Assembly (NCBI GenBank): GCA_002189035.1
Contig: NEEC01000004.1
Location: forward strand, 4,960,001-5,024,000
Direction of reading: 5' to 3'
DNA from: Utricularia gibba
Taxonomy: Eukaryota; Plantae; Magnoliophyta
DNA length: 64,000 nucleotides
Position 1 is the first letter of the stretch; each line of letters starts with the position of its first letter. Shown here piece by piece: positions 1 through 29,401 of the stretch. A program made the position numbers and the translations under genes. The notes beneath the pieces were generated by a model. That model did no database searches. It was not told the origin of the DNA and was given only the letters and a program-made list of their open reading frames with translations.

Positions 1-283
1 AAAGTAGATAAACGGTGGATCCGAGGACGATGGAAAAACCATAGCATAGAATATAAACGGGATCCAAGTTTAGAGATTCCCAGACACCGATCATCCCCTC
101 CACCCCGAGACGGCTGAGCTTGGCGGCCACGGCTCCGGCCAGCGGAATCAACAAGAGGGTGAAGAAGTTATTGATGACATACTGGTAACACAACTTGGGG
201 TACTTCTTCTTCGTTGATGCAGCGGCGGGAGCCATTCTTGTTGTTGCTGTTTGATTCTCCCTATCGGGCGCAAACGGGAACAT
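1..283 (-). CDS. KCS6: 3-ketoacyl-CoA synthase, KCS5/6 (CER6)-like, array copy 1; 5' part only, runs off the left edge
   Basis: Manual translation from the ATG at 283 gives MFPFAPDRENQTATTRMAPAAASTKKKYPKLCYQYVINNFFTLLLIPLAGAVAAKLSRLGVEGMIGVWESLNLDPVYILCYGFSIVLGSTVYLL, nearly identical to the N-terminus of copy 2. Confidence 0.9.
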   Translation of the reverse strand, partial: MFPFAPDRENQTATTRMAPAAASTKKKYPKLCYQYVINNFFTLLLIPLAGAVAAKLSRLGVEGMIGVWESLNLDPVYILCYGFSIVLGSTVYLL

Positions 284-1446
284 GATACTTAAAGACCCAA
301 ACCAAAACCAATGTTTTCCGTTGCATTAAATGGAGAGTTGGGAGTTTGAATTCCAATGACTCATTCCAACACAAAACATCATTTGCTTTTATTTATTTAT
401 TTATTTTTACCGAAAAAATATAGATATATTTAATTATTAAAACAAAATAAGTATTGGTTGTGGGTTGGTTTAATTTACATTCATGCCCCTATCTGGTGTT
501 CCCTATCATACCTATTTGCAAATGTAATAGTATTGTAATACTTGATTGAGTCCAACCTAAAAAAATCACAAAATACTCTAATCTATATCTAAAACATTCA
601 ATTTAATCTATGATATTATTAATGTTATAATACAAAATAACGACAAAATGTGTATTATTATTATTTCTCGAAAATCAATTCTCCAAAGAAGTGATAAAAT
701 CAAATGGGAGGCTTCTTTTTTTATAACATGAACCACCCACTTCTACGGTTATTAGTATCACTCTTGAGGTTGGTGTCCAACATAAATGGATGTGGGGTTT
801 TCTTCACCAATCAACAAGAAACAAATGCTACGTCACGCCACATCGACATATTTATGTGCCCATCCAACACCTTGTACCATGTGTTACGTACAAACCTGGG
901 GTAAACATGCACACACAGACACACACAAAGAGAGACATCTTAGGTAAATCGAAACGTCGGCAAACATGTCCAAAGTGGCGATGCCTGATGTTCGATTCCC
1001 GCTTTGTAATGAACGTTCATAGAACATGATGTTACATTAGACTCCCGAATCGAAAGTGGGCTCCTTTAGGGTTACGCAGTACCTCTGAATGGATGTGAAA
1101 TATGAGGTTACCTGCATTTAATTGTACATATCTGGCTTAGTATATAGTTTTAATGATTATTGGCTAATGTGATTCTTCTTTTTTTTTTCATAAAAATAAA
1201 ACATTATGCTTAAAATAACTAGTTTTTTGCCACATATATTACAGGATTATCAGATTTGTAAATAACTCGAAGAGGACGATTTCTCTCTTAAGAGTAAAGA
1301 AAGTAGTGTTTGGTTCTTTTGCAATAGATGTTATTTTGTAAAAATGTTTGGAAATCAATTTCGCAATTAAATAAGTAAAAAGTTAAAAATATTTTTTATT
1401 TCTAAAAGAAGACTACAGAGATAAGTTCTTATCTTATGAGAATAAT

Positions 1447-2606
1447 TTTGATTTATTGTCATGTTTCTTTAAAATTATTCAACATTCTATTTCCCAATGA
1501 TTTATTCTCTATAGTCATATTTCTTTATTATTTCGATGATTCCTAAAAGCTTTCAGGCTTAGATATGTTTTATGTAAGGATCTAATGAGTTGTCACACTT
1601 GATCCAACCATCTGGTGAGCACCCTCGTTGCACATTCTTCAATAAAAAAAAGTTTAATTGTGACAAGAAATTTAAAAATAGGGTAGCATGCATTATTAAG
1701 TTCGCCTGGTCGTCCCTAAAAATGACGATTATCCACCCTGAACGCGACCAAACACCAAAAACAATTTTGATTGGGCCGTCACGTAGAAGACCGTTCTTTC
1801 AACTAGTCCCCGATAGAAACATCAACATGATATCCCATCTTCCTAACTATTTGGTATTAAACCAAACAATCTCATATTAAGATTAATCAGTTGCATCTAA
1901 TTTTTTCTAATCATATCATTAATTTCTACATTTTAGAACATGAAATAACTTAGAAATAATTAAATCAAGGATGATGGACGCGTTTCGTAACATGAAGTGA
2001 TAATCATATAGTATGTGATTTTGTAAAAATGTTTGAAAATCAATTTTACAATTATATAGAGTGATTTCTACTTCAAAACAAGTAAAAAATTTATAAATAT
2101 ATTTTTTATTTCTAAAAAGAATACAGAGATGGGTTTCTATCTTATGAGAATCATTATTCGACCAAATGAAATCCTAAAAAATAATGATAAATATGATCAT
2201 ATTTGTAAATGATCCCGAAACAATCTCAAATTTGATTTATTGTCATGTTTCTTTAAAATTATTCAACATTCTATTTCCCAATGATTTATTCTCTATAGTC
2301 ATATTTCTTTATTATTTCGATGATTCCTAAAAGCTTTCAGGCTTAGATATGTTTTATGTAAGGATCTAATGAGTTGTCACACTTGATCCAACCATCTGGT
2401 GAGCACCCTCGTTGCACATTCTTCAATAAAAAAAGTTTAATTGTGACAAGAAATTTAAAAATAGGGTAGCATGCATTATTAAGTTCGCCTGGTCGTCCCT
2501 AAAAATGACGATTATCCACCCTGAACGCGACCAAACACCAAAAACAATTTTGATTGGGCCGTCACGTAGAAGACCGTTCTTTCAACTAGTCCCCGATAGA
2601 AACATC
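1447..2606. repeat. Near-perfect direct repeat (1447-1823 / 2231-2606, period 784 bp) forming a permuted copy of 7441-8224
   Basis: The two ~377-bp arms are identical except for one A in a poly-A run. The DNA between them matches 8041-8232 joined to 7441-7663. Confidence 0.95.
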
Positions 2607-3508
2607 TAAAAGATACCCCATCTTTGGAGTTGTTTGGTATTAAAAAAAACAATATCACATGGTATTTTAAATTGAAATAATCAATTATATAAGAAATTAC
2701 ATGTGACTAATAATTAATTGGATTTAATTTTTTTTATTATAATTTATGTTTCTTATATACTTGAACTTCACATGGATATTCGTCTGAGATCCATCAAATC
2801 TTTAATTTAAATATAGTATCTTAGTATTTATCTAATGTTTGGGTGGCTAAGATGGGTTTCATATTGATCTTAGTCCTGATTAAAAAAAAAAAGAAATGCA
2901 TTAAACTTTAGTGACAAAAATTAGATGGATATATTATCTAGGCATTATTCTCAATCATATAAGAAGAAATAAAAATATTAATAAAATCAAAGACTAGTTT
3001 GACTTGAGAACAAGTATTAGATCAAACTAACTTGTATCATGATTTAAAAGTGAAATAGTAAAATATATAATAAATTATAAATCATTAATCATCGATTGAA
3101 TTTAATCTTTTTAAATATAATCTATGTTTATTATATACTTAAAGTTCACGTGTGTACTCGTACTCATCAAATTCTTAATTTCTACATTTTAGAGCATGAA
3201 ACAATTCAGATAATTAAATCAAGGATGACCGACTCGTTTGGTAATACGAAGTGAAAATCATATAGCATGATTTTGTGTACTTAATTGGAGGTTTATGTAT
3301 TAGGTAATAATAGTTGCATATGCGAGAAAATAATATATTAAATGAATATGAATGAAAATTTTCTTTATTAAATGTTTAAAATAATCATATAAGATATATT
3401 AAATTTTATGTTTAGAATTACATATTTCTATTTTTTTATCGTAAAATATAAAAATACATATTGGGTGATACAACCTAACCGTCTCGTTAATAATTAATTG
3501 CTAACAAC

Positions 3509-3684
3509 CAGAGGCGGATCTAAGCAGGGGCTAAACTGGGCTTCAGCCCAGTCCAAAATTTTTTTAAAAAATTATTATTAAAATATAAAAGAGTTAATAT
3601 ATTTTAAATTTGTTTTACTATAAAATTTTATTTTATTAATTTTCAATTAACACCCCCTATAAATTTGATCAACATCCGCTGCTA
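3509..3684. mobile_element. hAT-type MITE, 176 bp
   Basis: 8-bp direct repeat CTAACAAC at 3501-3508 and 3685-3692. Imperfect TIRs CAGAGGCGGAT / ATCCGCTGCTA. The element is absent from the paralogous spacer near 8450-8470. Confidence 0.75.
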
Positions 3685-3983
3685 CTAACAACATAAATAA
3701 TACTATTATACTAAAATTTAATATGTTATTGAAATATATTTTTATCTGAGCATGTTATTAATATAGGGCTTAATCACCCACGTTTCTTATTCAAAAAGGG
3801 CATGTGGGCCAGGGTTATCTTCTAGAAGCTTAATCGAACGGATAAACAAAATTATATGGATGTTGTTCATTTGCAATATTGGAAAATTAGAAGATAACTT
3901 TGGTTATACAAAACACTACTATAACTAAATCAAACTCAGTCAATTGCACATATATTGTTCATGGATTAACTTTGTGGTAGGTA

Positions 3984-4400
3984 CCAGATAGCCGTTAGAG
4001 ATATTATGATTAGGAGCTGTAATTAGGATATCAGCGAGTGATTAGGCACGAATAATTGCAAAATTAGTAACCATGAAGTTGGAGTGTTTGGAATTTCGCA
4101 ATTAGTTATGTTGAATTATTTATAAAACGCACAATGGATTTATTCAAAAATTTCGGTCTGGAATAATTTTGAATATTAATTTTAATGATTTTTATGTATG
4201 TCCCAAATAGAAAAATAGTTATTTCAATTCTGGTTTGGTATTTTTAGTTATATATTTATATTAAAAATAATATAATATTCTTTTTTCGTATAAATAAAAA
4301 AATTTCATCCAATTATTATTAATCAATCAACTATATTTCATTCATTCATATCTCTTTATTAAAATAGTTTTTAATATATTCAACTGTCGTAATCAAATAC
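3984..4400 (+). repeat. Remnant of the HD-Zip 3' flank; the HD-Zip coding part is deleted in this unit
   Basis: CAGATAGCCGTTAG...TATGATTAGGAGCTGTAATT...TTAGTAACCATGAA...TTGAATTATTTATAAAAC aligns with the DNA right after the HD-Zip stop codon at 44300-44700. Confidence 0.75.
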
Positions 4401-4716
4401 ATTCAATATGTAGATTATGGTTTTAAAAAATGGATTCAATTATTTAGTTCAAAAAAATATATAAATAAACTCTAAACTTTCGTCTGTGAACGTTTGAACA
4501 TCGGAAAAATTTCCGGTGCTCAAAAGGTGGTTGCATGGTGATTGGCCGGGGGCGGAAAGATAACGTAAATGTTGCAAATCACTGAGGAAGTAGAGACGAG
4601 ATTTGGTGGGTAACGAGACAAGGAGAAAATGTAAAAGCACACCACTTTATTTATTTTCCGACAAAGTAAGTATTGCAGAATTCGACGGAGTATCGGGCTT
4701 CAGGGGCCCGCACGAA

Positions 4717-6246
4717 CTACAGCTTCACAACTTCTGGAATGGGGACCGGATATTTATCAATGCAATCCTTCCAGGGACCGTCCACCGGAGTTTTAATCGT
4801 GCGGTTGCATTTCCAGATCGCACTATTGCATTTAAACCCACTTCCAAACCCGATTTGCCAAACCTTGTTACCCTTCTTCATCCTCCCTTTAGCCTCTATA
4901 TAAGCGAGCTCATACCAAATCGAAGACGACGACGTATTCCCGAACCGGTGGAGCGCCATACGGGATGGTTCGACGTGCTCCGGCGAGAGCTGGAGACTTT
5001 TCTGCAACTCATCGATCACTGCCCGGCCGCCGGCGTGGATGCAGAAGTGATCGAAGGCTTGTTTGAAGTCAGGGGTGTAGAGCTTCCATGTAGGGTCGAT
5101 CATCTTTCTTCCTATGAAGGAAAGCGCGAATAAGAGCTTCTCCGACGGTGGAAGTGCTAGAGGTCCAATAGTAACTATGTTCGACTTCAGCGCTCTTCCG
5201 GCGGTGACCATCAAGTCCTTTGACAAGTGTACGCCTACATGGCCTTTTGAGTCTTCTTGCTGGAATACGCATCTGTAGGAGCTGTCATCGGCACCCTTAT
5301 GGGTTCGGACGACGTGGAGGAGTTTGTACTTCGCACGGCGGCGGTCGCTGGCCTTGTTGGAGAGGAGCATGGCAGCGGCGCCCATGCGAAAGATGCAGAT
5401 GGGTAAGAGCATGGCTCTATCCGACCCTTCGTAGTTATTAGGAGTGATGATTTCCGTACTAACAACAAGTGCATAGGAATTGGGATGCGCCTGAAGCAGA
5501 TCCTTAGCTAAATCAATCGATATCACACCAGCGCTGCACCCCATCCCCGAAAGATTGAAGCTCTTGATGTTACTCCTGAGCTTGTACTTATTCACGATCA
5601 TCGCTGATAACGACGGCGTCGGCGAGAATATGCTGCAGTTGACGATCAAGATATCAATGTCCCTTGGCTTGAGACCTGTTTTCCTCATTAAATTATCGAT
5701 CGCAGAGAACATGACCAGTTCAGCTTCCTCCCGAGCATTCTCCATCGTTGGTTTGGGCGGGATGTAGTGTACCGCCGGTGGCAAGGATGTTTCTTCTCCA
5801 AGTCCCGATCGTTCCACAATCTTCATCATGAAATCCACCTCATCAGGGCTAAATCTCTGAACAAGGTGCGCATGTTCCATGAACGTGGCATAAGGAACTC
5901 TGAAAGTGATGGGCGGCTTGAAACAACCGAAGTCCACCAGATAAATAGAACGTGGCTTCGAAAGTAGATAAACGGTGGATGCGAGGACGATGGAAAAACC
6001 ATAGCATAGAATATAAACGGGATCCAAGTTTAGAGATTCCCAGACACCGATCATCCCCGCCACCCCGAGACGGTTGAGCTTGGCGGCCACGGCTCCGGCG
6101 AGCGGAATCAACAAGAGGGTGAAGAAGTTATTGATGGCATACTGGTAACACAACATGAGGTACTTCTTCTTCGTTGATGCTGAAAGGGGAGCCGCCATTG
6201 TGGTGGTTTCTGTTTGATCTTCCCTACCGGCGGCAAACGGGAGCAT
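4717..6246 (-). CDS. KCS6: 3-ketoacyl-CoA synthase, KCS5/6 (CER6)-like, copy 2, intact (509 aa)
   Basis: Two N-terminal hydrophobic segments. Catalytic motifs GMGCSAG, FCIHAGG and [12 protein letters not shown]-terminus [31 protein letters not shown] matches CER6/KCS6. Confidence 0.95.
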   Translation of the reverse strand: MLPFAAGREDQTETTTMAAPLSASTKKKYLMLCYQYAINNFFTLLLIPLAGAVAAKLNRLGVAGMIGVWESLNLDPVYILCYGFSIVLASTVYLLSKPRSIYLVDFGCFKPPITFRVPYATFMEHAHLVQRFSPDEVDFMMKIVERSGLGEETSLPPAVHYIPPKPTMENAREEAELVMFSAIDNLMRKTGLKPRDIDILIVNCSIFSPTPSLSAMIVNKYKLRSNIKSFNLSGMGCSAGVISIDLAKDLLQAHPNSYALVVSTEIITPNNYEGSDRAMLLPICIFRMGAAAMLLSNKASDRRRAKYKLLHVVRTHKGADDSSYRCVFQQEDSKGHVGVHLSKDLMVTAGRALKSNIVTIGPLALPPSEKLLFALSFIGRKMIDPTWKLYTPDFKQAFDHFCIHAGGRAVIDELQKSLQLSPEHVEPSRMALHRFGNTSSSSIWYELAYIEAKGRMKKGNKVWQIGFGSGFKCNSAIWKCNRTIKTPVDGPWKDCIDKYPVPIPEVVKL

Positions 6247-6795
6247 GATATTTAAAGACCAAAAGCAAAACCGAAGTTTTCCATTGCATTAAATGGAGAG
6301 TTGGGAGTTTGAATTCCAATCACTCGTTCCAACACAAAAGTATTTATTTATTTATTTATTTTTAACGAAAAATATATAGATATATTTTGATTATAAATAA
6401 AAAAATAAGTCTTACTTCTTACACACATCCAATTTGCTCCCTATGTTGGTTTAATTTCCATTCATGCCCCTACCTTGTGTTCCATATCATACTTATTTGC
6501 AAATGTAATAGCATTGTAATATAACCTATACAACTCACAAAATGCTCTAACCTATATCTAAAACATTCGATTTAATATATAACATTATTCATTTTATAAT
6601 ACAAAATAACGACAAAATGTATATTATCATTATTTCTCGAAACAAGTGATAAAATCAAACGGCAGCCTTGTTTTTTGTTTTTTTTATAACAACAACCACC
6701 CACTTCTACGATTATTAGTATCACTGTTGAGGTTGGTATCCAACATAAATGGATGTGGGGTTGTCTTCACCAATCAACCAGAAACAAATGATATC

Positions 6796-7015
6796 TGATT
6801 GTTATTTAAAATTTTTGAAACATATTTATATTTTTCAAAAAATAAAAATAATTTTGTTCTAAAACACTAACAATTATAAAAATAATTCTATCAAAAAATA
6901 CTTTTGAAATTATACTATAAAAGTTACTTTTGAAAAAGTAAATAATATGTTACTTTTAATTATTATTTTTACTTTTCTAAAATAATTTTAAAAAAGTAAA
7001 AATAGATTCTAGCTT
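6796..7015. mobile_element. AT-rich 220-bp insertion flanked by ATATC direct repeats (possible decayed MITE)
   Basis: Absent from the paralogous spacers at ~825 and ~38945. ATATC at 6791-6795 and 7016-7020. No clear TIR. Confidence 0.45.
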
Positions 7016-7440
7016 ATATCATACCACATCAACATATTTGTGTGTCCATCCAACTACTTGTACCATGTGTCACGCACAAACCTGGGGTCAACATGCACGA
7101 ACATTCACATAATGAGAGACATCTTTACCTTATGTTCGATTCCTGTTTTGTAATGAACGTACATAGAACATGATGTTACATCAGGCTCCTTTAGGGTTAC
7201 GCAGTACCTCTGAGTGGGTGTGAAATATGAGGTTACCTGCATTTAATTGTACATATCTGGCTTAGTATATAGTTTTAATGATTGTTAGTTAATGTGATTC
7301 TTCGTTTTTTCATTAAAACGAAAAAAATGTGCTAAAAATAACTAATTTCTGACCCATATATCATAGGATAATCAGATTTGTAAATAACTTGAATGAGAAG
7401 ATGATTTTTTTTTCTCAAAGTAGTGTTTGGTTCTTTTGCA

Positions 7441-8232
7441 ATAGTATGTGATTTTGTAAAAATGTTTGAAAATCAATTTTACAATTATATAGAGTGATTT
7501 CTACTTCAAAACAAGTAAAAAATTTATAAATATATTTTTTATTTCTAAAAAGAATACAGAGATGGGTTTCTATCTTATGAGAATCATTATTCGACCAAAT
7601 GAAATCCTAAAAAATAATGATAAATATGATCATATTTGTAAATGATCCCGAAACAATCTCAAATTTGATTTATTGTCATGTTTCTTTAAAATTATTCAAC
7701 ATTCTATTTCCCAATGATTTATTCTCTATAGTCATATTTCTTTATTATTTCGATGATTCCTAAAAGCTTTCAGGCTTAGATATGTTTTATGTAAGGATCT
7801 AATGAGTTGTCACACTTGATCCAACCATCTGGTGAGCACCCTCGTTGCACATTCTTCAATAAAAAAAAGTTTAATTGTGACAAGAAATTTAAAAATAGGG
7901 TAGCATGCATTATTAAGTTCGCCTGGTCGTCCCTAAAAATGACGATTATCCACCCTGAACGCGACCAAACACCAAAAACAATTTTGATTGGGCCGTCACG
8001 TAGAAGACCGTTCTTTCAACTAGTCCCCGATAGAAACATCAACATGATATCCCATCTTCCTAACTATTTGGTATTAAACCAAACAATCTCATATTAAGAT
8101 TAATCAGTTGCATCTAATTTTTTCTAATCATATCATTAATTTCTACATTTTAGAACATGAAATAACTTAGAAATAATTAAATCAAGGATGATGGACGCGT
8201 TTCGTAACATGAAGTGATAATCATATAGTATG
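7441..8232. repeat. Source segment of the permuted 784-bp copy, bounded by 8-bp ATAGTATG direct repeats
   Basis: ATAGTATG at 7441-7448 and 8225-8232. The same octamer forms the tail-to-head junction at 2008-2015. Confidence 0.9.
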
Positions 8233-9335
8233 ATTATGTGTACTTTATTGAAGGTTTATGTACAGTTTATCAGGTAATAATAGTTGCATATGCGAGAAAA
8301 TAATATATTAAACGAATATGAATGAAAAATTTCTTTATTTAATGTTTTAAATGATTATATAAGATATATTAAATTTTATATTTAGAATTAGATATTTTTT
8401 TATCTTAAAAAATAAAAATACGTGTTCGGTGATGCAACGTAGCCGCCTCATTAATAATTAATAACATAAATGATAATATTATATGAAAATTTAATATATT
8501 ATTGAAATCAATTTTTATCTAAGCATGTTATGAATAGGAGGGTTTAATCACCCACGTTTCTTTTTCAAAAAGGGCATGTGGACCAGGGTGACCTTCTTGA
8601 AGTTTAACCAAGCGAATAAATAAAATAATATCGATATTATTTATTTAGAACACCCAAAAATTAGAACATATCTTTGATTGTACAAAATTTATTATAACTA
8701 AATCAATCTACGCAATCGATTGCACAGATATTGTTCATGGTTTAATTTTGCGGTAGGTTGAGGCCAATACTAAAATCAAGCATTGAAACCTGAAATGAGA
8801 TTTGAATTACAATTAGAATCCATGATTTTTTTGTATTCAATTCAATAATTTTTATAAAAGTTAAAAATTTTGAAATTTAAAAACATTAAATTTAGATTAT
8901 TATTATTGTTATTATTATTCATTTCAAAATGAATTGAATATTATGAGAACTCACCTTATCAAAAAAAAAAGGAGTTCCATTCCTTGCTCCTATTACTAAT
9001 TTTAATGCAATTATTGCACACTTCTTCCATATAATTTCAAATAATCTGAAATATTTTTTTTACTAAAACATAAATCATTATTGTTTCTAAGTAGTCAAAC
9101 ATTTTAATTATAAATTAATTTTGCATGTCACACATACGTGGCATCATTCGATCCATGCGTGACATTTTCCAAACTTTTCAAACTTATGTGAGGTTTGGTA
9201 TACTATTTGGAAGATCTTTCCAAGCAGTTGACGATGGAGCGTGACCGTCCGATCATCTGAAAATTTTCCGGTGCTCAAAAAGTGATTGCATGGTAATTCA
9301 GCGGGAACGGAAAGATAACCGAAAGGTTGCAAATC

Positions 9336-9657
9336 TGAAAGAATAAATTTTTGGAAGAATCACAATGTTTTGATAGATAAAATTCACCACACAAATGTTA
9401 TAATCAAACTACAGATAAATAGAGGATTTTTGATAGTTTCCGATCCATAGTTTTTACCTTGACTGGTGCTCTTCATTTAGAAGGTTCTTCACTTTCCTTT
9501 AGCAGCATGCGGATTACTCTTCACTTTGCCACGATTGATGCTACTTGGGCCATTCTTCAATTTACCATATTCCAATAGAAAGAGTTCATCCTTATCTCCC
9601 CTCTCCTTATCACTCCTTTCCTCAATCTTATTACTTCCTTTAATCTCTCTTTCAACA
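9336..9657 (-). repeat. 3' LTR of the copia element (322 bp, TGTTG...TTTCA on the minus strand)
   Basis: TG...CA ends, preceded on the minus strand by the PPT AGTTTGAGAGAGGG (9658-9671). Bases 9337-9396 match 14374-14433 at 58/60. Confidence 0.85.
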
Positions 9658-9752
9658 CCCTCTCTCAAACTTGGCTTGGGTTGAAGGCCTAATTTGCTTC
9701 TGAGGAAAAACTGCCTCTTAGTTGGCATTCTTTTGGTAAAGAGATCTGCCAC

Positions 9753-12700
9753 TTAGTGTTGTGCTGAAATATGATGAGTTGTTAAATAGCCCAAAGCAAC
9801 CCTCTCTCGCACAAAGTGATAGTCAATCTCAACATGCTTACTTCGGGAGTGAAGAATAGGATTTACTGTCAAGTAGAGTGCACTCAAGTTGTCGCAATAG
9901 AGTCTTGGGGTTTCGTTGAGCATCACACGAATATCCTTCAAGATAAATTGTAGCCATGTAGCCTCAGCTGCAGCATGTGCCATTGCTCTATATTCAGCCT
10001 CTGTACTTGATCTGGACACCGTATGTTGTTTTTTTGAGCTCCAGGAGATTGGATTTTTTCCAAGGACACAATATCCCGTAGTTGCAACTTGCCCAATCAG
10101 CATCAGAGAAGATTTGTAGTTGTAGTGGTGAATCAATATAGAACGTGAGACCCAACTCCAGAGTCCCTTTGATATATCGTAGGATTCTCTCAGCCATGAT
10201 TTTGTGATATGCAGTTGGCGTATGCATAAATTGAGACACAAAGTTCACACTATATATGATATCTGGCCTCGTAAAGGTAAGGTATTGAAGCACTCCTACA
10301 AGTGCTCTGAAGGGAGTGGGATCAGTAAGAGTCTCATCATTTTTTGGGGCAGTAAACTTCGCTGCTTGAGGTGTCAATGCTGGTTTACAGTCACATAGAC
10401 CAAACCTGTGAAGAATAGATAAAGCATAGTGAGCTTGTGAAAGATGAATTCCACTTGTGGTTTTTACCACTTGAACGCCAAGAAAATATTGTAGGTATCC
10501 AAGGTCTTTCATAGCAAATTCCAAGGATAGTTGATCAATTAACTTGGATATCAATTTTGAGGATGACCCTGTAACAATTATATCATCAACATAAAGTAAT
10601 AAAATTAGTGTATCATTACCAACATATGAAATGAAAAGAGATGGATCTACAAGGCTGCAAAAAAATCCAATTTTTAAGAGAAAAGAGCTAAAGCGATCAA
10701 ACCATGCCCTTGGAGCCTGTTTTAGTCCGTACAATGCTCGGTTAAGTTTGCAAACATGTGTAGGAAAATGGATATCCTTCATACTTGGAGGTTGTTCCAT
10801 AAAAATATCCTCAATGATGTGTCCATGTAAGAAAGCATTCTTAACATCGAGTTGGCGTATTTCCCAGCCATTACTTACCCCAATTGACACAATAAGACAT
10901 ATGGTACCTGGGCGAATAACAGGAGAAAAAGTTTCACTATAGTCAATACCATCAATTTGATCATACCCTTTGGCGACAAGGCGAGCTTTTAGGCGATCTA
11001 GTGCTCCATCAGGTTTGAGTTTTGCTTTAAATACCCATTTGCACCCAATGATGTGTTGTGACTCACTCGTGGGACTAGCCTCCATGTATCATTGTCGTGG
11101 AGGGCACCCAGCTCTTCTTCCATGGCTTTTTCCAACCAGGATGTTGAAGTGCCTCTTGAACCGATCTTGGCTCTGCTGGAACTGAGTAATGCACTGCCAT
11201 CTGTAAGGCATACTTTGGGTTGGGTTTAAATATCCCACGTTGTGCTCTTGTTCTCATCCCATGTGTTCTCTGCATAGATAAAGAATCAAGAGATTGTGAG
11301 GGAGTTACCAATTCATTACGCGAGACTGGATCTAACGATGAAATTGCCTCCTCAACACTAGTTATGTTGTTACTGTCGGGTGAAGTGGTGGCAACTACAG
11401 TCTCCCTAGAGGGCATTTCAGTGGTCTGGTTGTTGGTCGAAGTGGTGACAGCCTCTACTCTTGTAGATTGTATTTCATCGACCTGGAGGGTGGCAATTTC
11501 ATCGACCTGGATAGTGGCAGCCTCTCGGTCTGGTGGTTCCTCGATGAGAATTTCCTCATCAACGCTACGAGCATCAGTAAAGTCTAGGCATTCTGTGGCG
11601 GTGTGTTCCCCATCGTACACGTGGTTTGCACCTTGTTGCTGATTTTCTGCATTTGCTCCCTGCTCCAGGCCTAAACCCAAAAACTGTTGCTGCTGCTGAT
11701 TGTCTGAAGTAGCAGTGGTATGATGATGAGACGGCAGCAGAGAGGCTTCTTCTCTCACCCCACCAGGAACAATTGTACTAGTGAATTCAGGCATCTCCGT
11801 TGGGATCTGTTCTTCAGTAGGTACATGATGGTTTATGACAGTAGGTGCTTGCAAATTTCATGCAGCTATCAGGGGACTGTTTTGATGAGGGGGTTCTCTA
11901 GCTGCTGCTCCCGTGGTGAGAGGTTCTGAGTTTTCATTTGACAAGTCCTGCGTCCAGGCATTAAAGATCTTAATGACCAGCTGTGAAGAGGGAGGTGATG
12001 AATTAAGAGGTGAACGAAATGGGAATGATTGTTCATCAAAGATAGCGTGACGAGAGATATGGATTTTTTTGGCTGCTGGGTCATAACATCGGTATCCCTT
12101 ATGGCTGTCGATGTACCCTACAAAGACACATAAAGCTGTTTTTGGTGAGAACTTGTTGCGTTTAGAGTCACATAAATAAGGAAAACATTTTGCACCAAAA
12201 ACTTGAAGACTTGAGTAATCTGGATTTGAATTAAAAAGCATGGAGTAAGGAGAGCCTCTTTTGAGAGAAGGGGAAGGTAGTCGATTCTGTAAGTAGATGA
12301 CTGTTGAAAAAGCTTCAACCCAAAATGAGAGTGGTACTCCACTGTGAAACATCATGGTCATTCCATGCTCTCGTATTGTACGATGCTGTCGTTCCACAAC
12401 GCCCATCTGTTCATGAGTGTAAGGGCAGGAGAAAAAATGTAACATTCATGTTTCTAAGAAGTGAGATCTGAGTGAGTGATTGACAAATTCCCCACCATTA
12501 TCTGTTTGAAGAATTTTAATTTTTGCATTAAACTGCCTAGCTATATAACTTTCAAACTGATAAAAAATGCCAGTAAAATCACTTTTTTTTCTTAATGGAT
12601 AAAACCATAAAAAACGAGAATAATCATCAACAAGACAGGCATAATACAAAAAACCATTACGAGATATAACAGGTGCAGGTCCCCAAAGATCACAATAAAC

Positions 12701-14433: not shown

Positions 14434-16900
14434 AAACATGATGATTCAATCATAATTACTAGAAGTTTTAATTGTAATATCAATTTATTCATTGTTATAA
14501 TACTTTTTTGAGATTATTAGAAGTTTTTTTAGAGGATGTGCTCCTTTCAAAGAGTTTTATTTTTTAAAAAAAATAACTTTTAAGAAAATATTTTTTCAAA
14601 TTTTATTTAACATAATTTTTTTTATATTTTTCACTTAATTTATGGCGAAACAGAAATTCATCCTTTGTTGAGCTTACTTAATTTCATAATAGTAAAGTAT
14701 AGCATTACCTTTATTATTTGAAAAAAAGAATTTTTATTATTCTCATTTTAGTAATATTGTATATAAATATAATTATAACAATTTCTATCAGAAACACATG
14801 CTAAAGAATCTTTTTTTAAATAATACTTTATACAAATTACACTAATGTTTTAAAATAATTTATTTTTGTGTAAATTAATCATATTCATATTTAATATCGA
14901 GTAAATTAAAACATCATATTAAATGAGTCCTTATTACTTATTTTTGAAATGTAATTTTATGTTAAATATTAATTATCAATGGCATATTTTTTAATTAGAA
15001 GAATAATATTATATATTAAATATTCCAATATTTTTTTATTTAAAATTTCATTTTTATTAAAAAAATAAAATCGTACATGATTTTTTTTAATATACGAGAT
15101 AAATAATTACATGTAAATAACTAATTATATATATTTTATAGAATGTTTAATAGTATAGTATAAAAGATTTATATTCAAGTTTACAGAAACTAATATTTAA
15201 TTAAGTAGTATATATATATCAACCTTTTATAATTACACCACTCACATACACATATTTTGAGTATTAAGGTGGTATACACAAATAGAGTAAGGTTAATTGT
15301 ATTTATATCAGTAACATACTCAACTTTTTATTCTCAAATATCAAACGTTATATATACAATCAAGCATATAAATACTAACTACTATCAAACGAACTCTTAA
15401 TAATATTGCATATAATTTTTTTTGACCATACACATAGTAAATAATATTAAATTAAATAACACTTCGTATAAATCATTAATTTTGACGTTCATTAATTTCA
15501 CTAACATATTTAATATCATATGAATCAAACATGACATCAAAAGAGCTCATAAGTTTGGTATCCAACGTTAATGGATGTGGGGTTGTGTTCAACAAACAAC
15601 AAGAAACAAATGCTATGTCATGCCACATCAACATATTTGTATATGTATTCATCATACACCTTCTATCATGTGCCCTTCAAGAGGGCCGTACCCTTTCACA
15701 CACATACCTGGGGTACTTAATCCAAGTAAAAATAATAAAAAAAATTCATGTGGAAATGATTATCTGAATTTCCCTTCTTGCCAGAAATTTGTTGCCGTTT
15801 TCGCTGAATTTTTTATGTTCCACCCCTGTCGATAATGCATGAAAGAAAAAACATAATAAAAAAAAAACACACACACGGTGAGACACAAAGAGACATCCTT
15901 GGGAAATCTAAACTTTGGGAAACATGTGATTCCAAAATTGAAAATAGTCTCATTTAGGGTCACGTAATATTGAGTCATTTACAAATTTGGTATTTTTTTC
16001 TTTTCTCTCACACAGTAGGACAAATTTTCTTAATTGAGGTAATCAATTTTGTCGCATAATTAAGGTTGGATTCCCACTTTTTCATTACACCCAATACCTC
16101 TCAATAGGTATGAAATATGATATATCTTCTAAAATTTCAAGTAATTATTATTTTTAGTAAGTTGTATAGATCCAGTTTATATTTTATGAAATTTTTTTCA
16201 TATTTTTAAAAGTTTACACAACCCCAAACTCGTATAGATGGATTGATTTGAATAATTATACGTTAATGATTAAATAGATCGGTTTTATATATTTATTTGA
16301 TATGTAAATAGAAGTACAAAGTTTTTGGACATGAAATATGTTTTAAGTAACTATCTAATCAGTTGGCTGCCTCGGTCCAACCATCTGGCGAGCACCCTCG
16401 ATGGAAAATGAACTGTATTATTTTATTTAGAAAAATAGGGTATTAATTTGGCTTAATTTGTGCCTAAAAAGGACGATTATCCACTCCGAACGCGACTAAA
16501 CCCTCAAAAATAATTATTCTTGAGGCATCAACACGATATCCGATTAATGCCCAACACGTGGTTTGATTTGTGATTATGTGTACAACTAACGCGTTTTATT
16601 TGTGATTTATGAGACGTATGTATGAAAATAACATATTTAGTAATTTAAATTAATATTATTGGATAGCTTTTTCATTCACTATTATTAAACAATCATATAA
16701 AATATATGATGATTAAATTTTGTACTCAAAATGAAATATTTTTAATGAATTTTATCGTAAAAAATATAGAAAAACATTCTCTGATGAAAAAAGAAAAGAA
16801 AATTGGAGACATATATTGTTCAAGATTTTTAATTACTATTACATTTAATAATAAATGTAATTTATTATATATTAATATTTTACACGTGTTCGTCATATAT
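14434..16900 (-). repeat. Orphan KCS upstream module with no KCS gene attached
   Basis: 15520-16570 aligns with the copy-3 upstream region 18930-20290. 14434-14600 aligns with the regions upstream of copy 3 (~18825) and copy 6 (~32085-32350). Confidence 0.8.
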
Positions 16901-17116: not shown

Positions 17117-18645
17117 CTAGAGCTTCACAACTCTTGGAATGTTGACCGGATACTTATCAATGCAATCCTTCCAGGGACCGTCGACCGGAGTTTTGATCGT
17201 GCGGTTGCATTTCCAGACCGCACTGTTGCATTTAAATCCACTTCCAAACGCGATTTGCCAAATCTTGTTGCCCTTCTTCATCCTCCCTTTAGCTTCTATG
17301 TAAGCGAGCTCATACCAAATCGAAGACGAGGAGGTATTCCCGAACCGGTAGAGCGACATACGCGAAGCTTCAACGTGCTCCGGGGAGAGCTCGAGGCTTT
17401 TCTGGAGCTCATCGATCACCGCCCGGCCACCGGCGTGGATGCAGAAGTGATCGAAAGCTTCTTTGAAGTCAGGGGTGTAGAGCTTCCAGTTAGGGTTGAT
17501 GATCTTTCTTCCTATGAGGGATAGTGCGAATAAGACCTTCTCCGACGGCGGAAGTGCTACAGGTCCAAGGGTAGTTATGTTCGACTTCAACGCTCTTCCG
17601 GCGGTGGCCATCAAGTCCTTTGACAAGTGCACGCCTACTATGCCTTCGGAGTCTTCTTGCTGGAACACACATCTGTAGGAGCTGTCATCGGCACCCTTAT
17701 GGGTTCGAACGACGTGGAGGAGTTTGTACTTGGCACGGCGGCGATCGCGGGCCTTGTTGGAGAGGAGCACTGCAGCGGTGCCCATGCGAAAGATGCAGTT
17801 GGGTAAGAGCATGGCTCTCTCCGAACCTTCGTAGTTATTAAGAGCAATGATTTCCGCACTCACAACAAGTGCATAGGAACTGGGATACGCCTGAAGCAGA
17901 TCCTTAGCTAAATCAATCGAAATCACACCAGCGCTGCACCCCATCCCCGAAAGATTGATGCTCTTGATGTTACTCCGGAGCTTGTACTTATTCACGATCA
18001 TCGCTGATAACGACGGCGTCGGCGAGAACACGCTGCAGTCGACGACCAAAATATCAATGTCCCTTGGTTTCAGCCCTGTTTTCCTAATCAAATTATCGAT
18101 CGCAGAGAACACGAGCAATTCAGCTTCCTCCCGAGCTTTCTCTATCGTTGGTTTAGGCGGGATGTAGTGCATCGCCGGTGGCAAGGATGTTTCTTCTCCA
18201 ATTCCCGATCGTTCCACAATCTTCTTCATGAAATCCACGCTCTCAGGGTGAAATCTCTGAAGAAGGTGAGCATGCTCGATGAACGTGGCAAAAGGCACTC
18301 TTAAACTGAAGGGAGGCTTGCAACAAGCGAAGTCCACCAGATAAATAGATCGCGGCTTGGAAAGTAGATAAACGGTTGCTGCGAATATGATGCAGAAAAC
18401 AGCGCATAGAATATAAATGGGATCCAAGTTTAGAGATTTCCAGGCCCCGATCATCCCCTCCACCCCCAGACGCCTGAGCTTGACTGCCACAGCCGCAGCC
18501 AGAGGAATCAACAAGAGGGTGAAGAAGTTATTGACAACATGCTTATAACACACTTTGAGATACTTGTGCTTCGTCGATGCAGAAGGGGAGCCGCCATTCT
18601 GGTGGTTTCTGTTTGATCTTCCCTACCGGCGGCAAACGGGAGCAT
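17117..18645 (-). pseudogene. KCS6: KCS copy 3: full length, with a 1-nt deletion after codon ~21 (pseudogene or assembly indel)
   Basis: ATG at 18645 to stop at 17117 is 1529 nt, versus 1530 in copy 2. Plus strand reads AGAAGGGG where copy 2 has TGAAAGGGG (18581-18588). The rest of the ORF is open with all catalytic motifs. Confidence 0.8.
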
Positions 18646-19321: not shown

Positions 19322-21815
19322 GTGAGACACATACTTGGGAAATCTAAACTTTGGGGAAACATGTGTAAGGGTGTAACATTTGATTCCAAAATTGAAAGTA
19401 GTCTCATTTAGGGTCACGCAATATCATGTCATTTACAAATTTGATCATCTTTTTCTTTTCTCTCACACAGTCATATAAATTTTCTTAATTTATGGCAATC
19501 AATTTTCTCACATAATTAATGTTGGATTCCCAATTTTTTAGTACACCCCCAATACCTCTCAATAGGTAATGAAATATGAGGTTACCTGCATTTAATTTAG
19601 CATGTCTGCCTTATTGTATAGTTTTAATTATTGTGTGTGTCCTCATTTGTGAAATTTAATGTTCTTTATACCTTTTTTAAAGACTTTTATAACCTTTTAT
19701 GTAGTTGATGATAGGTGCAGAATTCTACAAGTGAGCAGGAAAAAATGGAGGTGTGGATGAGAAGACGATGTATGGTAGAGAGAATGGAGGAGAGTAGATT
19801 TTTAGTTATGATATATCTTCTAATTTATAGAATATAAATTACAAAATAATAAATTTTTTTACTAAGTTATATAGATCCAATTTATATTTTACTAAAAATA
19901 CTTTTCTTAAATTAAAAATATTTCTTATTTTTAAAAATTTACACAACCCAAACTCTTTTACACTAGTTGATTTGAATAATTGTACGTTAGTGATTAAACA
20001 TCTCGATTTTATAAATGTATTTGATATGTGAGTATAAACTCAAAGTTTTTGAGCATGAAATATGTTTCAAGTTACTATCTAATGAGTTGGCTGGCTCGAA
20101 CCAACCATGTGGCGAGCACCCTCGATGGAAAATAAACTGTATTATTTTTTTAGAAAAATAGGGTATTAATTTGGCTTAATTTGTGCCAAAAATGGACGAT
20201 TATCCACTCCGAACGCGACTAAACCCTCAAAAACAATTATTCTTGAAGCATCAGCACGATATCCGATTAATGTCCAACACGTGGTTTGATTTGGGCTTCC
20301 AGGTCGAGGAGGTGTTTGCGATAATGCAATGATTATTGTACCATTAACTAATTATTCTATGAGCGTGATCAAAGTGAACAAACCAAATTGCACTTGTTCA
20401 TTTACAACACGGAAGATTCATTATACTCGAACAATGTGTTAATGAATACATGTCAAACCTAAATATATAATAAATATAGATTATATTAAAAATGGATATA
20501 TTCGATTATAATAATTTATAATTTTTTAAATATTTAATTATTTAACTTTCAAAATTTTGAAATATGATTATTTATTACATTAGGGGGCATGTTTGATACG
20601 TAAGATAAATGATATTTTTACTTATGATTATATTTTTAATGTGTTTGGTATAAATGATTGAACAATCACTAATAATTCAACAAACTTACGATAATCTCAC
20701 ATACATAGTAATAATGAAATGTGGGGAGTGGGTCAGATTGTTAAAACTAATGTATAATTTGTCTAATTACAAATAAATTCAATTATACATATCAAACATA
20801 AAAATGCATAATCTATAATATTTAATATATATCAATCACAAATAATTCAAAACCCTCGTTATATAATCTTTTGTATCAAACATGTACCAAACATGTCCTA
20901 GAAGGACTATGCAACCATGCGCCCTGTGTTAGCCCATCTCATCCTTCATTGAATTTGCCTAGTGTCACGGCCCTTATGAGCCCATCGTGCTCCCTGGGCC
21001 TGCCGTGTCCCAACATTCCATGTTCTTGGAAATCGGCTAGGCTGCCGTGTCGGCCCCACTCTGCCGTGTCCCAACACTCCATGTTCTTGTACCTTTTTCT
21101 TTTTCTCTTTTTCATCCAGATTCAAAGGATGAGGATGGTTAATAAAGGGGCACTCGACCGCACACATTCCGAATGTTTTTAAAATTGATACAATTATCCT
21201 TAATGTTTAATGAAAATGATATAATTCATCTTTATAAATCTATTTTGTTTTTCGCATTTTGACTAAGTATATATATTTAGTTTCAAATCTTTTTTACGTT
21301 AATTATTTTTTGATTTCATGTTTTAAAGAATACTTGTAATTCATATTCATTATTTAAAAACCATATATATTTGATCTCAATTTTTTTATAATTTGATTAA
21401 ATTAGTCTTCACTCACCACCGCCAGTCGTTTGTCGCCCATTGCTCGCACTCGTGCCTACGCCACTACCGTCGCCCGTCGACAGTGGTTGGCGGCCGTCGT
21501 TTGGCGGTCGATCGGATGCGATTGATAATAGTAAAATTAAATTGAAAAAATAGGATTTATAATTGGGGATTAAGATCAACAATGATAGTGTTTTTGATCG
21601 ATTTCATACAATAAGAATCAATTGTTAATTGTTTTAAAATAATGAGGATTAAAATCCAATATATATTCTCTAATCATGTCATTTAACCAAATAATAATGA
21701 ATATTACCGTAATTATCCATTCAAAAAGTATGGGCACACTTATTTATTTTTATTTTCCAACAAAGTAAGAATTGCAGAGTTTGACTACGTGTCGGGCTTC
21801 AGGGCCCAGCACGAA

Positions 21816-23297
21816 CTACAGCTTCACAAATTCTGGAATGGAGACTGGATATTTATGAATGAAATCCTTCCAGGGACCGTCGACCGGAGTTTCGATCGTG
21901 CGGATGCATTTCCAGATCGCACTATTGCATTTAAACCCACTTCCAAACCCGATTTGCCAAACCTTGTTACCCTTCTTCATCCTCCCTTTAGCCTCTATGT
22001 AAGCGAGCACATACCAAATCGAAGACGACGCCGTATTCCCGAACTGGTGGAGCGTCATACGGGAAGGTTCGACGTCCTCCGGCGAGAGCTGGAGGGTTTT
22101 CTGGATCTCATCGATCACCGCCCGGCCGCCAGGGTGGAAGCAGAAGTGATCGAAAGCTTGTTTGAAGTCAGGGGTGTAGGGCTTCCATTTCGGGTTGATC
22201 ATCTTTCTTCCTATTAGGGATAGCGCGAATAAGAGCTTCTCCGATGCCGGAAGTGCTATAGGTCCAATAGTAGTTATGTTCGACTTCAACGCTCTTCCCG
22301 CGGTGACCAACAAGTCCTTTGACAAGCGCACGCCTACGTGGCCTTCGGAGTCTTCTCCCTTGAATATGCATCTGTAGGAGCTGTCATCGGCACCCATATG
22401 GGTTCGGACGACGTGGAGGAGTTCGTACTTCGAACGGCGGCGATCGCGGGCCTTGTTGGAGAGGAGCATGGCAGCGGCGCCCATGCGAAAGATGCAGACG
22501 GGTAAGAGCATAGCTCTCTCCGAGCCTTCGTAGTTACTGAGAGTCAAGATTTCCGCACTCACAACAAGTGCATAGGAATTGGGAAGCGCCTGAAGCAGAT
22601 CTTTAGCTAAATCAATCGAAATCACACCAGCGCTGCACCCCATCCCCGAAAGATTGAAGCTCCTGATGTTACTCCTGAGCTTGTACTTATTCATGATCAT
22701 CGATGATAACGACGGCGTCGGCGAGAACACGCTGCAGTTGACGACCAAAATATCAATGTCCCTTGGCTTGAGCCCAGTTTTCGTCATCAAATTATCGATC
22801 GCAGAGAACATGACCAATTCAGCTTCCTCACGAGCTTTCTCCATCGTTGGTTTGGGCGGGATGTAGTGAATCGCCTCTGGCAAACATGCTTCTTCTCCAA
22901 TTGCTGATCGTTCCAGAATCTTCATCATGACAGCCATGCTATCAGGGTGATATCTCTGAAGATGGTAAGCATGTTCCATGAACCTGGAAAAAGGCGCTCT
23001 TAAAGTAGAGGGAGGCTTGCAACAATCAAAGTCCACCAGATAAATTGATCGTGGCTTCAAAAGTAGACAAACGGTTGCTGCGAAGATGATGGAGAAAACA
23101 GCGCATGGAATATAAATGGGATCCAAGTTTAGAGATTTCCAGACACCGATCATCCCCTTCACCCCCAGACACCTGAGCTTGACTACCACGGCGGCAGCCA
23201 CAGGAATCAACAAGAGGGTGAAGAAGTTATTGACGTCATACTGGTAGAACAATTTGAAGTACTTCTTCTTCGTTGATACAGAGGTGGGAGCAGCCAT
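21816..23297 (-). CDS. KCS6: 3-ketoacyl-CoA synthase copy 4, intact from the second ATG (493 aa), most divergent copy
   Basis: Motifs GMGCSAG, FCFHPGG and LHQFGNTASSS; C-terminus ...YPVSIPEFVKL. The upstream ATG at 23335 is out of frame after a 10-nt deletion. Confidence 0.9.
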   Translation of the reverse strand: MAAPTSVSTKKKYFKLFYQYDVNNFFTLLLIPVAAAVVVKLRCLGVKGMIGVWKSLNLDPIYIPCAVFSIIFAATVCLLLKPRSIYLVDFDCCKPPSTLRAPFSRFMEHAYHLQRYHPDSMAVMMKILERSAIGEEACLPEAIHYIPPKPTMEKAREEAELVMFSAIDNLMTKTGLKPRDIDILVVNCSVFSPTPSLSSMIMNKYKLRSNIRSFNLSGMGCSAGVISIDLAKDLLQALPNSYALVVSAEILTLSNYEGSERAMLLPVCIFRMGAAAMLLSNKARDRRRSKYELLHVVRTHMGADDSSYRCIFKGEDSEGHVGVRLSKDLLVTAGRALKSNITTIGPIALPASEKLLFALSLIGRKMINPKWKPYTPDFKQAFDHFCFHPGGRAVIDEIQKTLQLSPEDVEPSRMTLHQFGNTASSSIWYVLAYIEAKGRMKKGNKVWQIGFGSGFKCNSAIWKCIRTIETPVDGPWKDFIHKYPVSIPEFVKL

Positions 23298-24970
23298 TCT
23301 TGTGGCTTCTGTTTATCGGCGGCAAACGGGAGCATGGTATTTATAGACTCAAACAAAAACCAGGGTTTCCCATTGCATTAAATGATGGTTAGTGAGTTGT
23401 TGCTGCTTTCATTTACTCTGTTTATTTTTTAAGACTTCCCATTTCATCAAACAATGGCTAGATATTCGAAGACAAAATGTGTGTCATCATTACTCTTCCA
23501 AAATGGCTTGTCTGTCAAAAGTAATTTCCATGTAATAAAATCATATCGAACCTTGCTTGTAATATCATCAACCAATTCAAAAGTTACTACTAAAATTGTT
23601 AGAACTCGATTGGTAGGGCATTAAAGAATACATTATGGTAAATAACATTTGTTAAAATGACACGTTTGGTGAGCAGTAGTATTCCTTAATATTATTATGA
23701 GAAGAGGATTTATTGGAAGAGAGTAAGTTTTTTTATTATTATTATGATATGCCTTGGAATCAATAGAACACATTTTATTACATTTCATATCAAGAAAAAT
23801 GATATGAGAAAGATGACGACTATTATTGAGTTGGCTTTATTGTGCCTATAATGTACACCTATCCACCACAAACACCACTAAACAACGAAACGACAGCAAT
23901 TATCATATGGACAACTTTTTACGGGTTTATATATAATTTATGAACGATCAATAATTACGTATGTAATAAAATAATATATTTAATTATTTAAATTAATAGT
24001 ATTGGATAATATCTTCATTCATTATTATGAAAAAAATATATAATATATATGATAATTGCTTTTATCGTAAAAAAAGCACAAAAAGTTTCTGAAAAAAAGT
24101 GGAGACATCCATTGTTCAATAATTTCAGTCTAGCCATTTCGTTAATAATTGCATGGTATTATCAAAAAAGATATTTATTGCATGATTAGGTTTGAATCCC
24201 CATTATTTATTTGTCCTGATTATTATTATAACCGTATTTTTTATTTAAAAGGGGTGATTAATTTTTAATATTTTAATGGGAGTTAATATATCATTCAAAT
24301 CTAGGTTTATCCCAAGGGATGCAGGGCATACTATTAATAGGAGGGTCTAATCACCCACGTTTATTTTGCAAAAAGAGGCATGTGGTGGGCATGTGGGTCA
24401 GGGTTATGTCTTGCTGGGAGCCAATGGCTACAGACATTACGAAAGTGGAGTAGGGCTTCTACTTTAAACTCTATATTTAAACTTTTCACATTAATAAAAT
24501 ACAAGGAAAAAAGGGGGCAATCGACCCTATGCATTCCGAATGTTTTTTAAAAATGGTACGATTAGTTATTAACGTTTAATTAAAATGATATAGTTAGTTT
24601 TTATTAGCCTATTTAGTCAACATATTTGATGTATCTATTATATTTAGTTTTAGATCTTTTTTCTTTAATTCATTTTTATTTATTTATTTATTTATTAATA
24701 TTAATTATAATTGATCTTCAATATTTAAAAACAGTACATATTTGATCTCAATTATTGTATAATTTGATAAAATTAATTTTTATTTCTTTCGACCACCGCC
24801 GCTGCCGACAATTGCTCATCACCTCCGCCCATGCCACTGTCGGTCGATCGTCGCCACTACCTGTCGCTTGTTGGGTGTTCAAGTGCCCGTTGCTCGTGCC
24901 ACTGCCATAACCCGTCGGCAGTGTTCGGCGGCAATCGATTGACGGTCGATCGGCACTAGGTTCGTGGCAG

Positions 24971-26014: not shown

Positions 26015-27001
26015 CTAGAGCTTCACAGCCTCTGGAATGGAGACCTTCCAGGGACCGTCCACCGGAGTTTTGATCGCGCGGTTGCATTTCCAGATCGCAC
26101 TACTGCACTTAAACCCCCTTCCAAACGCGATTTGCAAAATCTTGTTGCCCTTCTTCATCCTCCCTTTAGCTTCTATGTAAGCGAGCTCGTACCAAATGGA
26201 AGACGAGGACGTGTTCCCGAACCGGTAGAGCGACATACGCGAAGCTTCAACGTGCTCTGGGGAGAGATCGAGGCTTTTCTGGAGCTCATCGATGACCGCC
26301 CGGCCGCCGGCGTGGATGCAGAAGTGATCGAAAGCTTGTTTGAAGTCAGGGGCGTAGATCTTCCAGTTAGGGTTGATGATCTTTCTTCCTATAAGGGATA
26401 GTGCGAATAAGACCTTCTCCGACGGCGGAAGTGCTATAGGTCCAAGGGTAGTTATGTTCGACTTCAACGCTCTTCCGGCGGTGGCCATCAAGTCCTTTGA
26501 CAAGTGCACGCCTACTTTGCCTTCGGAGTCTTCTTGCTGGAACACACATCTGTAGGAGCTGTCATCGGCACCCTTATGGGTTCGGACGACGTGGAGGAGT
26601 TTGTACTTGGCACGGCGGCGATCGCGGGCCTTGTTGGAGAGGAGCACTGCAGCGGCGCCCATGCGAAAGATGCAGTTGGGTAAGAGCATGGCTCTCTCCG
26701 AACCTTCGTAGTTATTAAGAGCAATGATTTCCGCACTCACAACAAGTGCATAGGAACTGGGATGCGCCTGAAGCAGATCCTTAGCTAAATCAATCGATAT
26801 CACACCAGCGCTGCACCCCATTCCCGAAAGATTGATGCTCTTGATGTTACTCCTGAGCTTGTACTTATTCACGATCATCGCTGATAACGACGGCGTCGGC
26901 GAGAACACGCTGCAGTCGACGACCAAAATATCAATGCCCCTTGGTTTCAGCCCTGTTTTCCTAATCAAATTATCGATCGCAGAGAACACGAGCAATTCAG
27001 C
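26015..27001 (-). pseudogene. KCS6: KCS copy 5, 5'-truncated pseudogene
   Basis: KCS homology ends at ~27001 (AELLVFSA), so the first ~180 codons and the proximal promoter are missing. A 21-nt deletion removes DCIDKYP near the C-terminus, and GSGFKCNS has become GRGFKCSS. Confidence 0.9.
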
Positions 27002-28541: not shown

Positions 28542-29401
28542 CTACAGCTTCACAACTTCTGGAATGGAGACCGGATATTTATGAATGCAATCATTCCAGG
28601 GACCGTCGACCGGAGTTTTGATCGTGCGGTTGCATTTCCAGACCGCACTGTTGCATTTAAACCCACTTCCAAACCCGATTTGCCAAACCCTGTTACCCTT
28701 CTTCATCCTCCCTTTAGCCTCAATGTATGCGAGCTCATACCAAATGGAAGACGACGTATTCCCAAATCGGTGGAGCGCCATACGGGATGGCTCCACGTCC
28801 TCCGGCGAGAGCTGGAGGCTTTTCTGCACCTCATCGATCACCGCCCGGCCGCCGGAGTGGAAGCAGAAGTGATCAAAAGCTTGTTTGAAGTCAGGGATGT
28901 AGGGCTTCCATTTAGGGTTGATCATCTTTCTTCCTAATAGGGATAGCGCGAATAAGAGCTGCTCCGACACCGGAAGTGCAAGAGGTCCAAGAGTGGCTAT
29001 GTTCGACTTCAATGCTCTTCCGGCGGTGACCCTCAAGTCCTTTGACAATTGTAACCCTACTATGCCTTCGGAGTCTTCTTGCTGGAAGACGCATCTGTAG
29101 GAGCTGTCATCGGCACCCATATGGATTCGGACGACATGGAGGAGTTTATACTTCGCACGACGGCGATCGCCGGCCTTATTGGATAGGAGCACGGCAGCGG
29201 CGCCCATGCGAAAGATGCAGTTGGGTAAAAGCATGGCTCTCACCGAGCCTTGGTAGTGATTGGGAGTGATGATTTCCGTAGTCACAACAAGCGCACACGA
29301 ATTGCGATGCACCTGAAGTAGATTCTTAGCTAAATCAACCGATATCACACCAGCGCGCACCCCATTCCCCCAAGATTGAAGCTCTTGATGTTACTCCTGA
29401 G
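28542..29401 (-). pseudogene. KCS6: KCS copy 6, 3' half ([14 protein letters not shown]...PEVVKL)
   Basis: Continues the 5' half across the 29402-31253 insertion. There is a 1-nt deletion immediately after the catalytic Cys codon (TGC GC GCT), and GNTSSS lacks one Ser. Confidence 0.9.

Follow-up and report, generated by a model that had tools for sequence, protein, structure and literature searches.

Within the 64,000-nt stretch of Utricularia gibba DNA analysed here (the window), the spacer upstream of one wax/fatty-acid elongase gene (KCS; very-long-chain 3-ketoacyl-CoA synthase) contains a 1.16-kb tract, at 1447–2606, which is a rearranged and nearly letter-perfect copy of the spacer upstream of the neighbouring KCS gene. 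The source has the segment order X-Y-Z, whereas the recipient reads X'-Y-Z-X-Y-Z', with native, diverged X' and Z' on either side of the copied Y-Z-X-Y. Three routes yield this exact sequence: copying during break repair with a backward jump on microhomology, a circular donor, and conversion from an allele with a tandem duplication. We tentatively rank a single recent break-repair event with such a back-jump (synthesis-dependent strand annealing, SDSA; ectopic gene conversion) slightly ahead of its rivals, at somewhat less than even probability.

The window contains a tandem KCS array in which every gene lies on the minus strand. A truncated gene at 2–283 (copy 1 in the initial annotation) is cut by the window start and retains the N-terminal 95 codons, with 84% identity by tblastn to residues 1–95 of the protein encoded at 4717–6246. 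The latter gene (copy 2) is intact, encodes 509 amino acids and contains both domains expected of a KCS, FAE1_CUT1_RppA (Pfam, 1.7e-135) and ACP_syn_III_C. The nearest database proteins to its product are KCS6/CER6-like with just 72–73% identity, and a lookup for an exact database record of this protein found none. More KCS copies or pieces occupy the minus strand at 17120–18645, 21819–23312, 26018–27004, 28545–29369 with 31255–31923, and 36317–37840. The recipient spacer lies upstream of the left-edge KCS (283..2) and the paralogous source spacer 5.4 kb away, upstream of 4717–6246, with the rearranged and source segments 1.2–2.3 kb upstream of these first two genes. The initial annotation had called the segments promoter; they are upstream segments of minus-strand KCS genes, for which a promoter role is a candidate one. 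An Rfam search of 1–9500 returned no RNA family, an ORF scan of 1300–2700 nothing above 96 amino acids, and metagenome scans with Y patterns no match.

Other repeats are present in the array. Two KCS coding regions share a 958-nt tract (17167–18124 and 26044–27001) at 96.9% identity, and the proteins of this pair are each only ∼85% identical to the 4717–6246 copy; the tract may stem from a duplication of younger age or else from an older conversion. A pair of ∼540-nt direct repeats (34061–34597 and 42053–42590; 94% identity, 8 kb apart), with a further match between 34636–34782 and 42833–42979, brackets the intact KCS at 36317–37840 and is either an LTR pair enclosing the gene or a segmental duplication.

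Across 1447–2606, the recipient is letter-identical to 7441–8232 except for one A absent from a poly-A run at 2427. Aligned in two overlapping parts, 7661–8232 equals 1444–2015 with one mismatch, at 1446, and 7441–8040 equals 2008–2606 with zero mismatches and a single 1-nt indel in the poly-A run at 2427. The native left flank X' (1310–1446) has 79–85% identity to 7428–7588 and is without 72 nt which the donor carries at 7589–7660. It is followed by the first Y copy (Y1, 1447–1822; identical to 7664–8039), donor-type Z with the octamer described below at its end (1823–2015; identical to 8040–8232), donor-type X (2016–2230; identical to 7449–7663), and a second Y copy (Y2, 2231–2606), which is identical to Y1 and the donor except for seven A rather than eight at 2424–2430. 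This seven-A run may be an assembly error; contigs covering it show eight A. Native Z' starts at 2607–2663 with ∼71–75% identity to donor Z, and the right switch point maps to AACATC (2601–2606) at the Y/Z' border. The starts of Y1 and Y2 are 784 nt apart, which is the length of the source unit X-Y-Z (7441–8232 including its second octamer). The permuted order reported in the initial annotation holds at all coordinates on alignment, as does its period of 784; the tract, at 1.16 kb, exceeds one unit.

The joint between Z and X consists of the octamer ATAGTATG (2008–2015), which also bounds the source unit at 7441–7448 and 8225–8232 and has only one further occurrence in the 64 kb. As first described, it is a tail-to-head join through the bounding octamer. 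Homeology was sought on the flanks of this 8-nt microhomology and none was found (local alignment ∼1 sd above shuffles), and an 8-nt match at a given offset is met at 5.9e-5 of positions. Since only the unit at 7441–8232 has both octamers in perfect form, the recipient counterparts being imperfect (ATAGATG and ATAGCATG), that unit is the source, and the direction of transfer originally proposed, from there to the 1447 locus, is upheld. The source unit itself is unchanged and single-copy in the window. An 8-nt joint, a duplication within the copied tract and an unaltered donor are the hallmarks of template switching or microhomology-bounded duplication; Y-Z-X-Y as against X-Y-Z, with a tail-to-head joint that the source locus lacks, is likewise the circular permutation of eccDNA-mediated duplication. 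The collinearity with the donor that marks interlocus gene conversion is lacking, and because the Z-X joint lies within the tract, the present donor cannot have produced it by plain conversion.

Outside the tract, the two spacers share 71–96% identity per 100-column block, mostly 80–90%, and when they are aligned with the insert removed, identity in Y is exactly 100%. A near-identical tract with sharp borders, 100% inside as compared to 71–96% outside, is in this respect the pattern left by conversion, and the earlier view of a recent insert lying between diverged flanks is borne out. No second off-diagonal tract at ∼100% identity was detected elsewhere in the 64-kb window. To the right of Y, Z' is ∼71–75% like Z for some 50 nt and is then interrupted by a TRIM-like element of ∼500 nt (2664–3161) with two ∼120-nt direct repeats, 378 nt apart and 78% alike. 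This insertion is found in the recipient spacer and is absent from the donor spacer, and homology on the right stops there; relatives lie at 29404–30126, 42694–42799 and 20460–20553 (other strand), and the element is multi-copy in the genome as judged from reads. The insertion predates the event, because a contig of an accession without the joint (X2, below) runs into the element. By alignment, Y is an island of homology between the 72-nt indel and the poorly matching Z' with its TRIM-like insertion, which under any homology-based model would explain why the tract ends at the Y borders. Farther from the tract, ∼200 nt at 6816–7015, upstream of the 4717–6246 gene, are missing from the paralogous spacer (gap at 827–830).

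The copied sequence has gained no substitution over 1160 nt, against ∼13% divergence of the units, which indicates that the event is very young. Plant mutation rates are near 7e-9 per site per generation, and the corresponding upper bound on age is roughly 2e5 generations.

Short-read contigs of four public runs (X1–X4) were compared with window positions 1000–3500; X1 may be the assembly's own sample. A 681-nt X1 contig covers 1803–2482 and crosses the Z-X joint with no mismatch, at a depth of 6.9 as compared to 3.3 on the adjoining exact contig 2494–3280, which crosses Y-Z'. This approximately twofold ratio fits two copies of Z and X and three of Y. An X4 contig (2440–2655) is exact across Y-Z', and X3 contigs are exact over 1000–1452, across X'-Y, and over 1557–1921. 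Exact contigs thus span both outer borders, in three runs, and the Z-X joint, being present in reads, was therefore not made by the assembler; the initial annotation's own caveat of misassembly is answered to this extent.

In run X2, which carries the same species label, the flanks differ from the window by 0.5–3%. X2 contigs cross X'-Y (1129–1511) and Y-Z' (2382–2699), and an X2 Y-Z contig (1598–2015, 13 differences) continues directly into the sequence that flanks the 7441-type locus on the right. Depth on X was zero (2016–2259; contigs of ≥95% identity) and no joint was seen, with Y, Z and both flanks present, although contigs are a better guide to presence than to absence. With X'-Y' and Y'-Z' adjacent pairs, no X and no joint, X2 probably lacks the insert, and the structure is therefore probably polymorphic. 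The copy-2 spacer of X2 may have lost X or carry a strongly diverged form of it. Of the two accession states envisaged at the outset, X2 probably represents the empty 1447 locus.

Two X2 contigs were rebuilt from their listed differences and aligned to the window's three Y copies as well as to four further paralogous spacers. The copy-2-type Y of X2 departs from the window at 8 sites within 1628–1714, and the copy-1-type Y at 9 sites in 2528–2600 (equivalent to 1745–1817) and at none in the preceding 146 nt; in the Z' part of the copy-1 contig, only 2 of 93 sites differ. The two Y copies of X2 differ from one another by ∼8%, as do the flanks. All three Y copies in the window are one identical mosaic, with a 5' part like X2 copy 1 and a 3' part like X2 copy 2. 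Outgroup paralogs carry the X2 copy-2 state at 1628 and 1709–1714, and the 5' Y state therefore derives from copy 1 and has passed, in the window, into copy 2. The 5' Y of the 7441 locus (7664–7961) has such copy-1-derived bases, e.g., TCGTCCC as against TTGTGCC in the outgroups and X2. Conversion thus ran also from copy 1 to copy 2 in the 5' part of Y; the 3' part moved the opposite way, from copy 2 into both Y copies of copy 1. On this comparison Y has undergone repeated exchange, in either direction. At 1447, the left border is then the ancestral X'-Y adjacency beside the 72-nt indel, not a new joint, and the donor tract may in fact begin anywhere within 1447–1745. These marker sites suggest a donor-type tract of at least 1745–2600, or 856 nt, which would exceed one 784-nt circumference; that Y' was still diverged at the event is read from the contigs of one accession, X2.

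From these features we infer a break, an order of steps and a jump. A break in or beside Y' of the spacer upstream of the left-edge KCS would have been mended with the paralogous spacer, 5.4 kb off, as template (SDSA). The invading end would have paired within 5' Y, over which the spacers were already identical, and copied the remaining Y and then Z. At the octamer 8225–8232, the new strand would have left its template and re-primed on 7441–7448, 784 nt backward on 8 nt of microhomology. X and Y would then have been copied a second time, until the strand was captured, at the Y/Z' border (AACATC), by the second end of the break. On the first pass into Z, the second end would have found little to anneal to, since Y is an island and Z' offers a poor match and the TRIM-like insertion. 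Copy-repair of this kind would leave 1160 donor-identical nucleotides with sharp borders inside spacers otherwise 71–96% alike, and would place the donor 3' part in both Y copies, continuous copying yielding a tract of at least 856 nt, more than 784, in one step. It also fits a joint of pure 8-nt microhomology with no flanking homeology, which by chance has a frequency of 5.9e-5 per position.

This pattern is reminiscent of yeast MAT switching, in which repair synthesis yields microhomology-bounded tandem duplications in the copied tract and −1 homopolymer slips, the donor remaining unchanged (PMC12891019). In the KCS spacer, the internal duplication of the recipient tract is similarly bounded and the donor has stayed unaltered, with one copy in the window; the tract's sole difference, one A too few in an A run, is like the documented −1 slips, and such a slip may also be present. 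However, this −1 is absent from all contigs and may be an assembly error. The jump also departs from the yeast precedent: duplication-making backward jumps there are ∼40 nt, and longer switches need ∼200 nt of homeology (PMC12891019), whereas 784 nt would have been bridged here on 8 nt without homeology. Copy-repair further takes Y' to have been diverged at the event, on the evidence of one accession's contigs, and needs a second, earlier event, as copy-1-derived 5' Y has also moved into copy 2. Counted from an X2-like ancestor, copy-repair takes 2 events, the circle 2–3, and conversion from a tandem allele 3–4.

A circular donor is possible but on balance doubtful. A 784-nt X-Y-Z circle closed via the octamer would have integrated into a pre-homogenised Y or served as template for ∼1.5 turns. 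The joint is the exact tail-to-head closure of 7441–8232 through its bounding octamer, circle-mediated duplication has permuted order as its accepted mark (PMC7188851), and circles of such size are known from rice, which forms them at direct repeats of 7–15 nt and up to 4.5 kb (PMC10948907). Given identical Y, one crossover yields exactly X'-Y-Z-X-Y-Z', and prior homogenisation of Y is plausible because Y was exchanged in both directions in the window. The initial annotation had a circle recombining into the paralogous Y, which can be entertained, but not in its simplest form: one crossover of a monomer circle into diverged Y' should leave a single circumference of donor DNA, 784 nt, and reciprocal chimeric Y copies, whereas 1160 nt are donor-identical and at least 856 nt of donor type include the donor 3' part in both Y copies. 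With a donor-type tract longer than 784 nt, a single monomer crossover therefore works only if Y was homogenised before. Circle formation in rice is accompanied by loss of the chromosomal segment (PMC10948907), whereas the source here is intact. The circle route also takes more steps than one repair event, and the circle itself is hypothetical. We accordingly regard the circle as possible and do not favour it, its simple form needing an extra step; that a sub-kilobase, microhomology-closed circle acted as donor in the plant germline, whether as integrant or as multi-turn template, and doubled the upstream module of a paralog in a structure still polymorphic, is a claim to which we give limited credence.

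Conversion of Y-Z-X-Y into the paralogous spacer from an X-Y-Z-X-Y-Z allele at 7441, the duplication having collapsed or lying on another chromosome, would account equally for the joint and for the tract borders by two common processes, and the X1 joint contig, which is without a branch into the copy-2 flanks, is still compatible with a duplication there. We consider this origin unlikely, given that the 7441 locus is single-copy in the window, that the X2 copy-2 contig runs on from Z into the right flank, and that three events (duplication, conversion, and loss or reassortment) would have passed while 1160 nt gained no substitution. Near-identical repeats a few kilobases apart are a classic source of misassembly, and the only long contig over the joint is from X1, possibly the assembly's own sample. 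Even so, it is very improbable that the Y-Z-X-Y order is not real in the plant: a mis-join of the two loci cannot make the Z-X joint, because the joint exists in neither locus, and the 681-nt joint contig is mismatch-free at ∼2× single-copy depth beside exact border contigs in three runs. A transposon-type origin, with the 8-nt repeat as a hAT-like target duplication or the copy as a Helitron rolling-circle product, would draw on the 8-nt direct repeats bounding the unit and on a more-than-unit length that recalls rolling-circle products. It is scarcely credible here, the unit containing no ORF and no RNA family; no inverted pairs of ≥40 nt occur in 1–12000, and neither hAT or Helitron ends nor an insertion relative to the paralog was found. 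Its collinearity with X'-Y'-Z' in the other spacer marks X-Y-Z as ancestral spacer, not an insertion. Two other schemes were rejected. Had the recipient first been tandemly duplicated in situ and then converted twice, Z' with the TRIM-like element would have to have been deleted, and the recipient octamers are imperfect; unequal crossover between the spacers would have removed or added an entire 5.4-kb unit, and no such change is seen.

On present evidence the case neatly illustrates processes already known (interlocus conversion, template switching, circle-mediated duplication) without adding a new one. At cattle KIT, serial translocation reportedly proceeded through circular intermediates. 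The cattle KIT alleles have been described (PMC12235870), as has eccDNA-mediated duplication in human by circle formation, cutting and re-insertion (Takahashi and Innan 2020; PMC7188851). As in those duplications, the copy is circularly permuted relative to its source and has a tail-to-head joint. However, the human and cattle cases involve 20–500 kb, non-homologous sites and one circumference, whereas the KCS spacer tract involves a 0.8-kb unit, a homologous place in the paralogous spacer, and ∼1.5 donor-identical circumferences. An identical tract with sharp borders and two-way exchange in Y resembles interlocus conversion of tandem paralogs (concerted evolution), from which the tract differs in not being collinear with its donor. 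For the spread of Drosophila satellites, the same two alternatives, reintegrated eccDNA and interlocus conversion accompanied by a template switch, were both left open (PMC7403614), and there, too, the truncated end units together make one unit; unlike those arrays, the KCS case concerns a unique-sequence gene spacer with joint and borders readable to the base.

Y contains two conserved blocks (7780–7844 and 7929–7983), with 76–88% matches at 16336–16515, 20060–20238, 33024–33098 and 40430–40653. Both are the only parts of a 7300–8400 query to match the otherwise unalignable spacers of other, far more diverged KCS copies, and the matches lie ∼1.1–2.8 kb upstream of the respective KCS start codons. 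The block pair at 16336–16515 stands where a KCS gene seems to be missing. Their conservation makes the Y blocks candidate shared cis-regulatory elements. Upstream of the left-edge KCS both are now doubled (1563–1627/1712–1766 and 2347–2411/2495–2549), in agreement with the earlier proposal that conserved upstream motifs of copy 1 had been duplicated.

The event has put two copies of a candidate upstream module before the left-edge KCS gene. As every border is readable to the base and the event is very young and apparently polymorphic, it offers an unusually legible and testable example, in which population data could choose between circle re-insertion and template-switch repair, a choice usually left undecided. 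The case shows tandem gene arrays reshuffling candidate regulatory DNA, with a conserved upstream module doubled from the neighbouring paralog.
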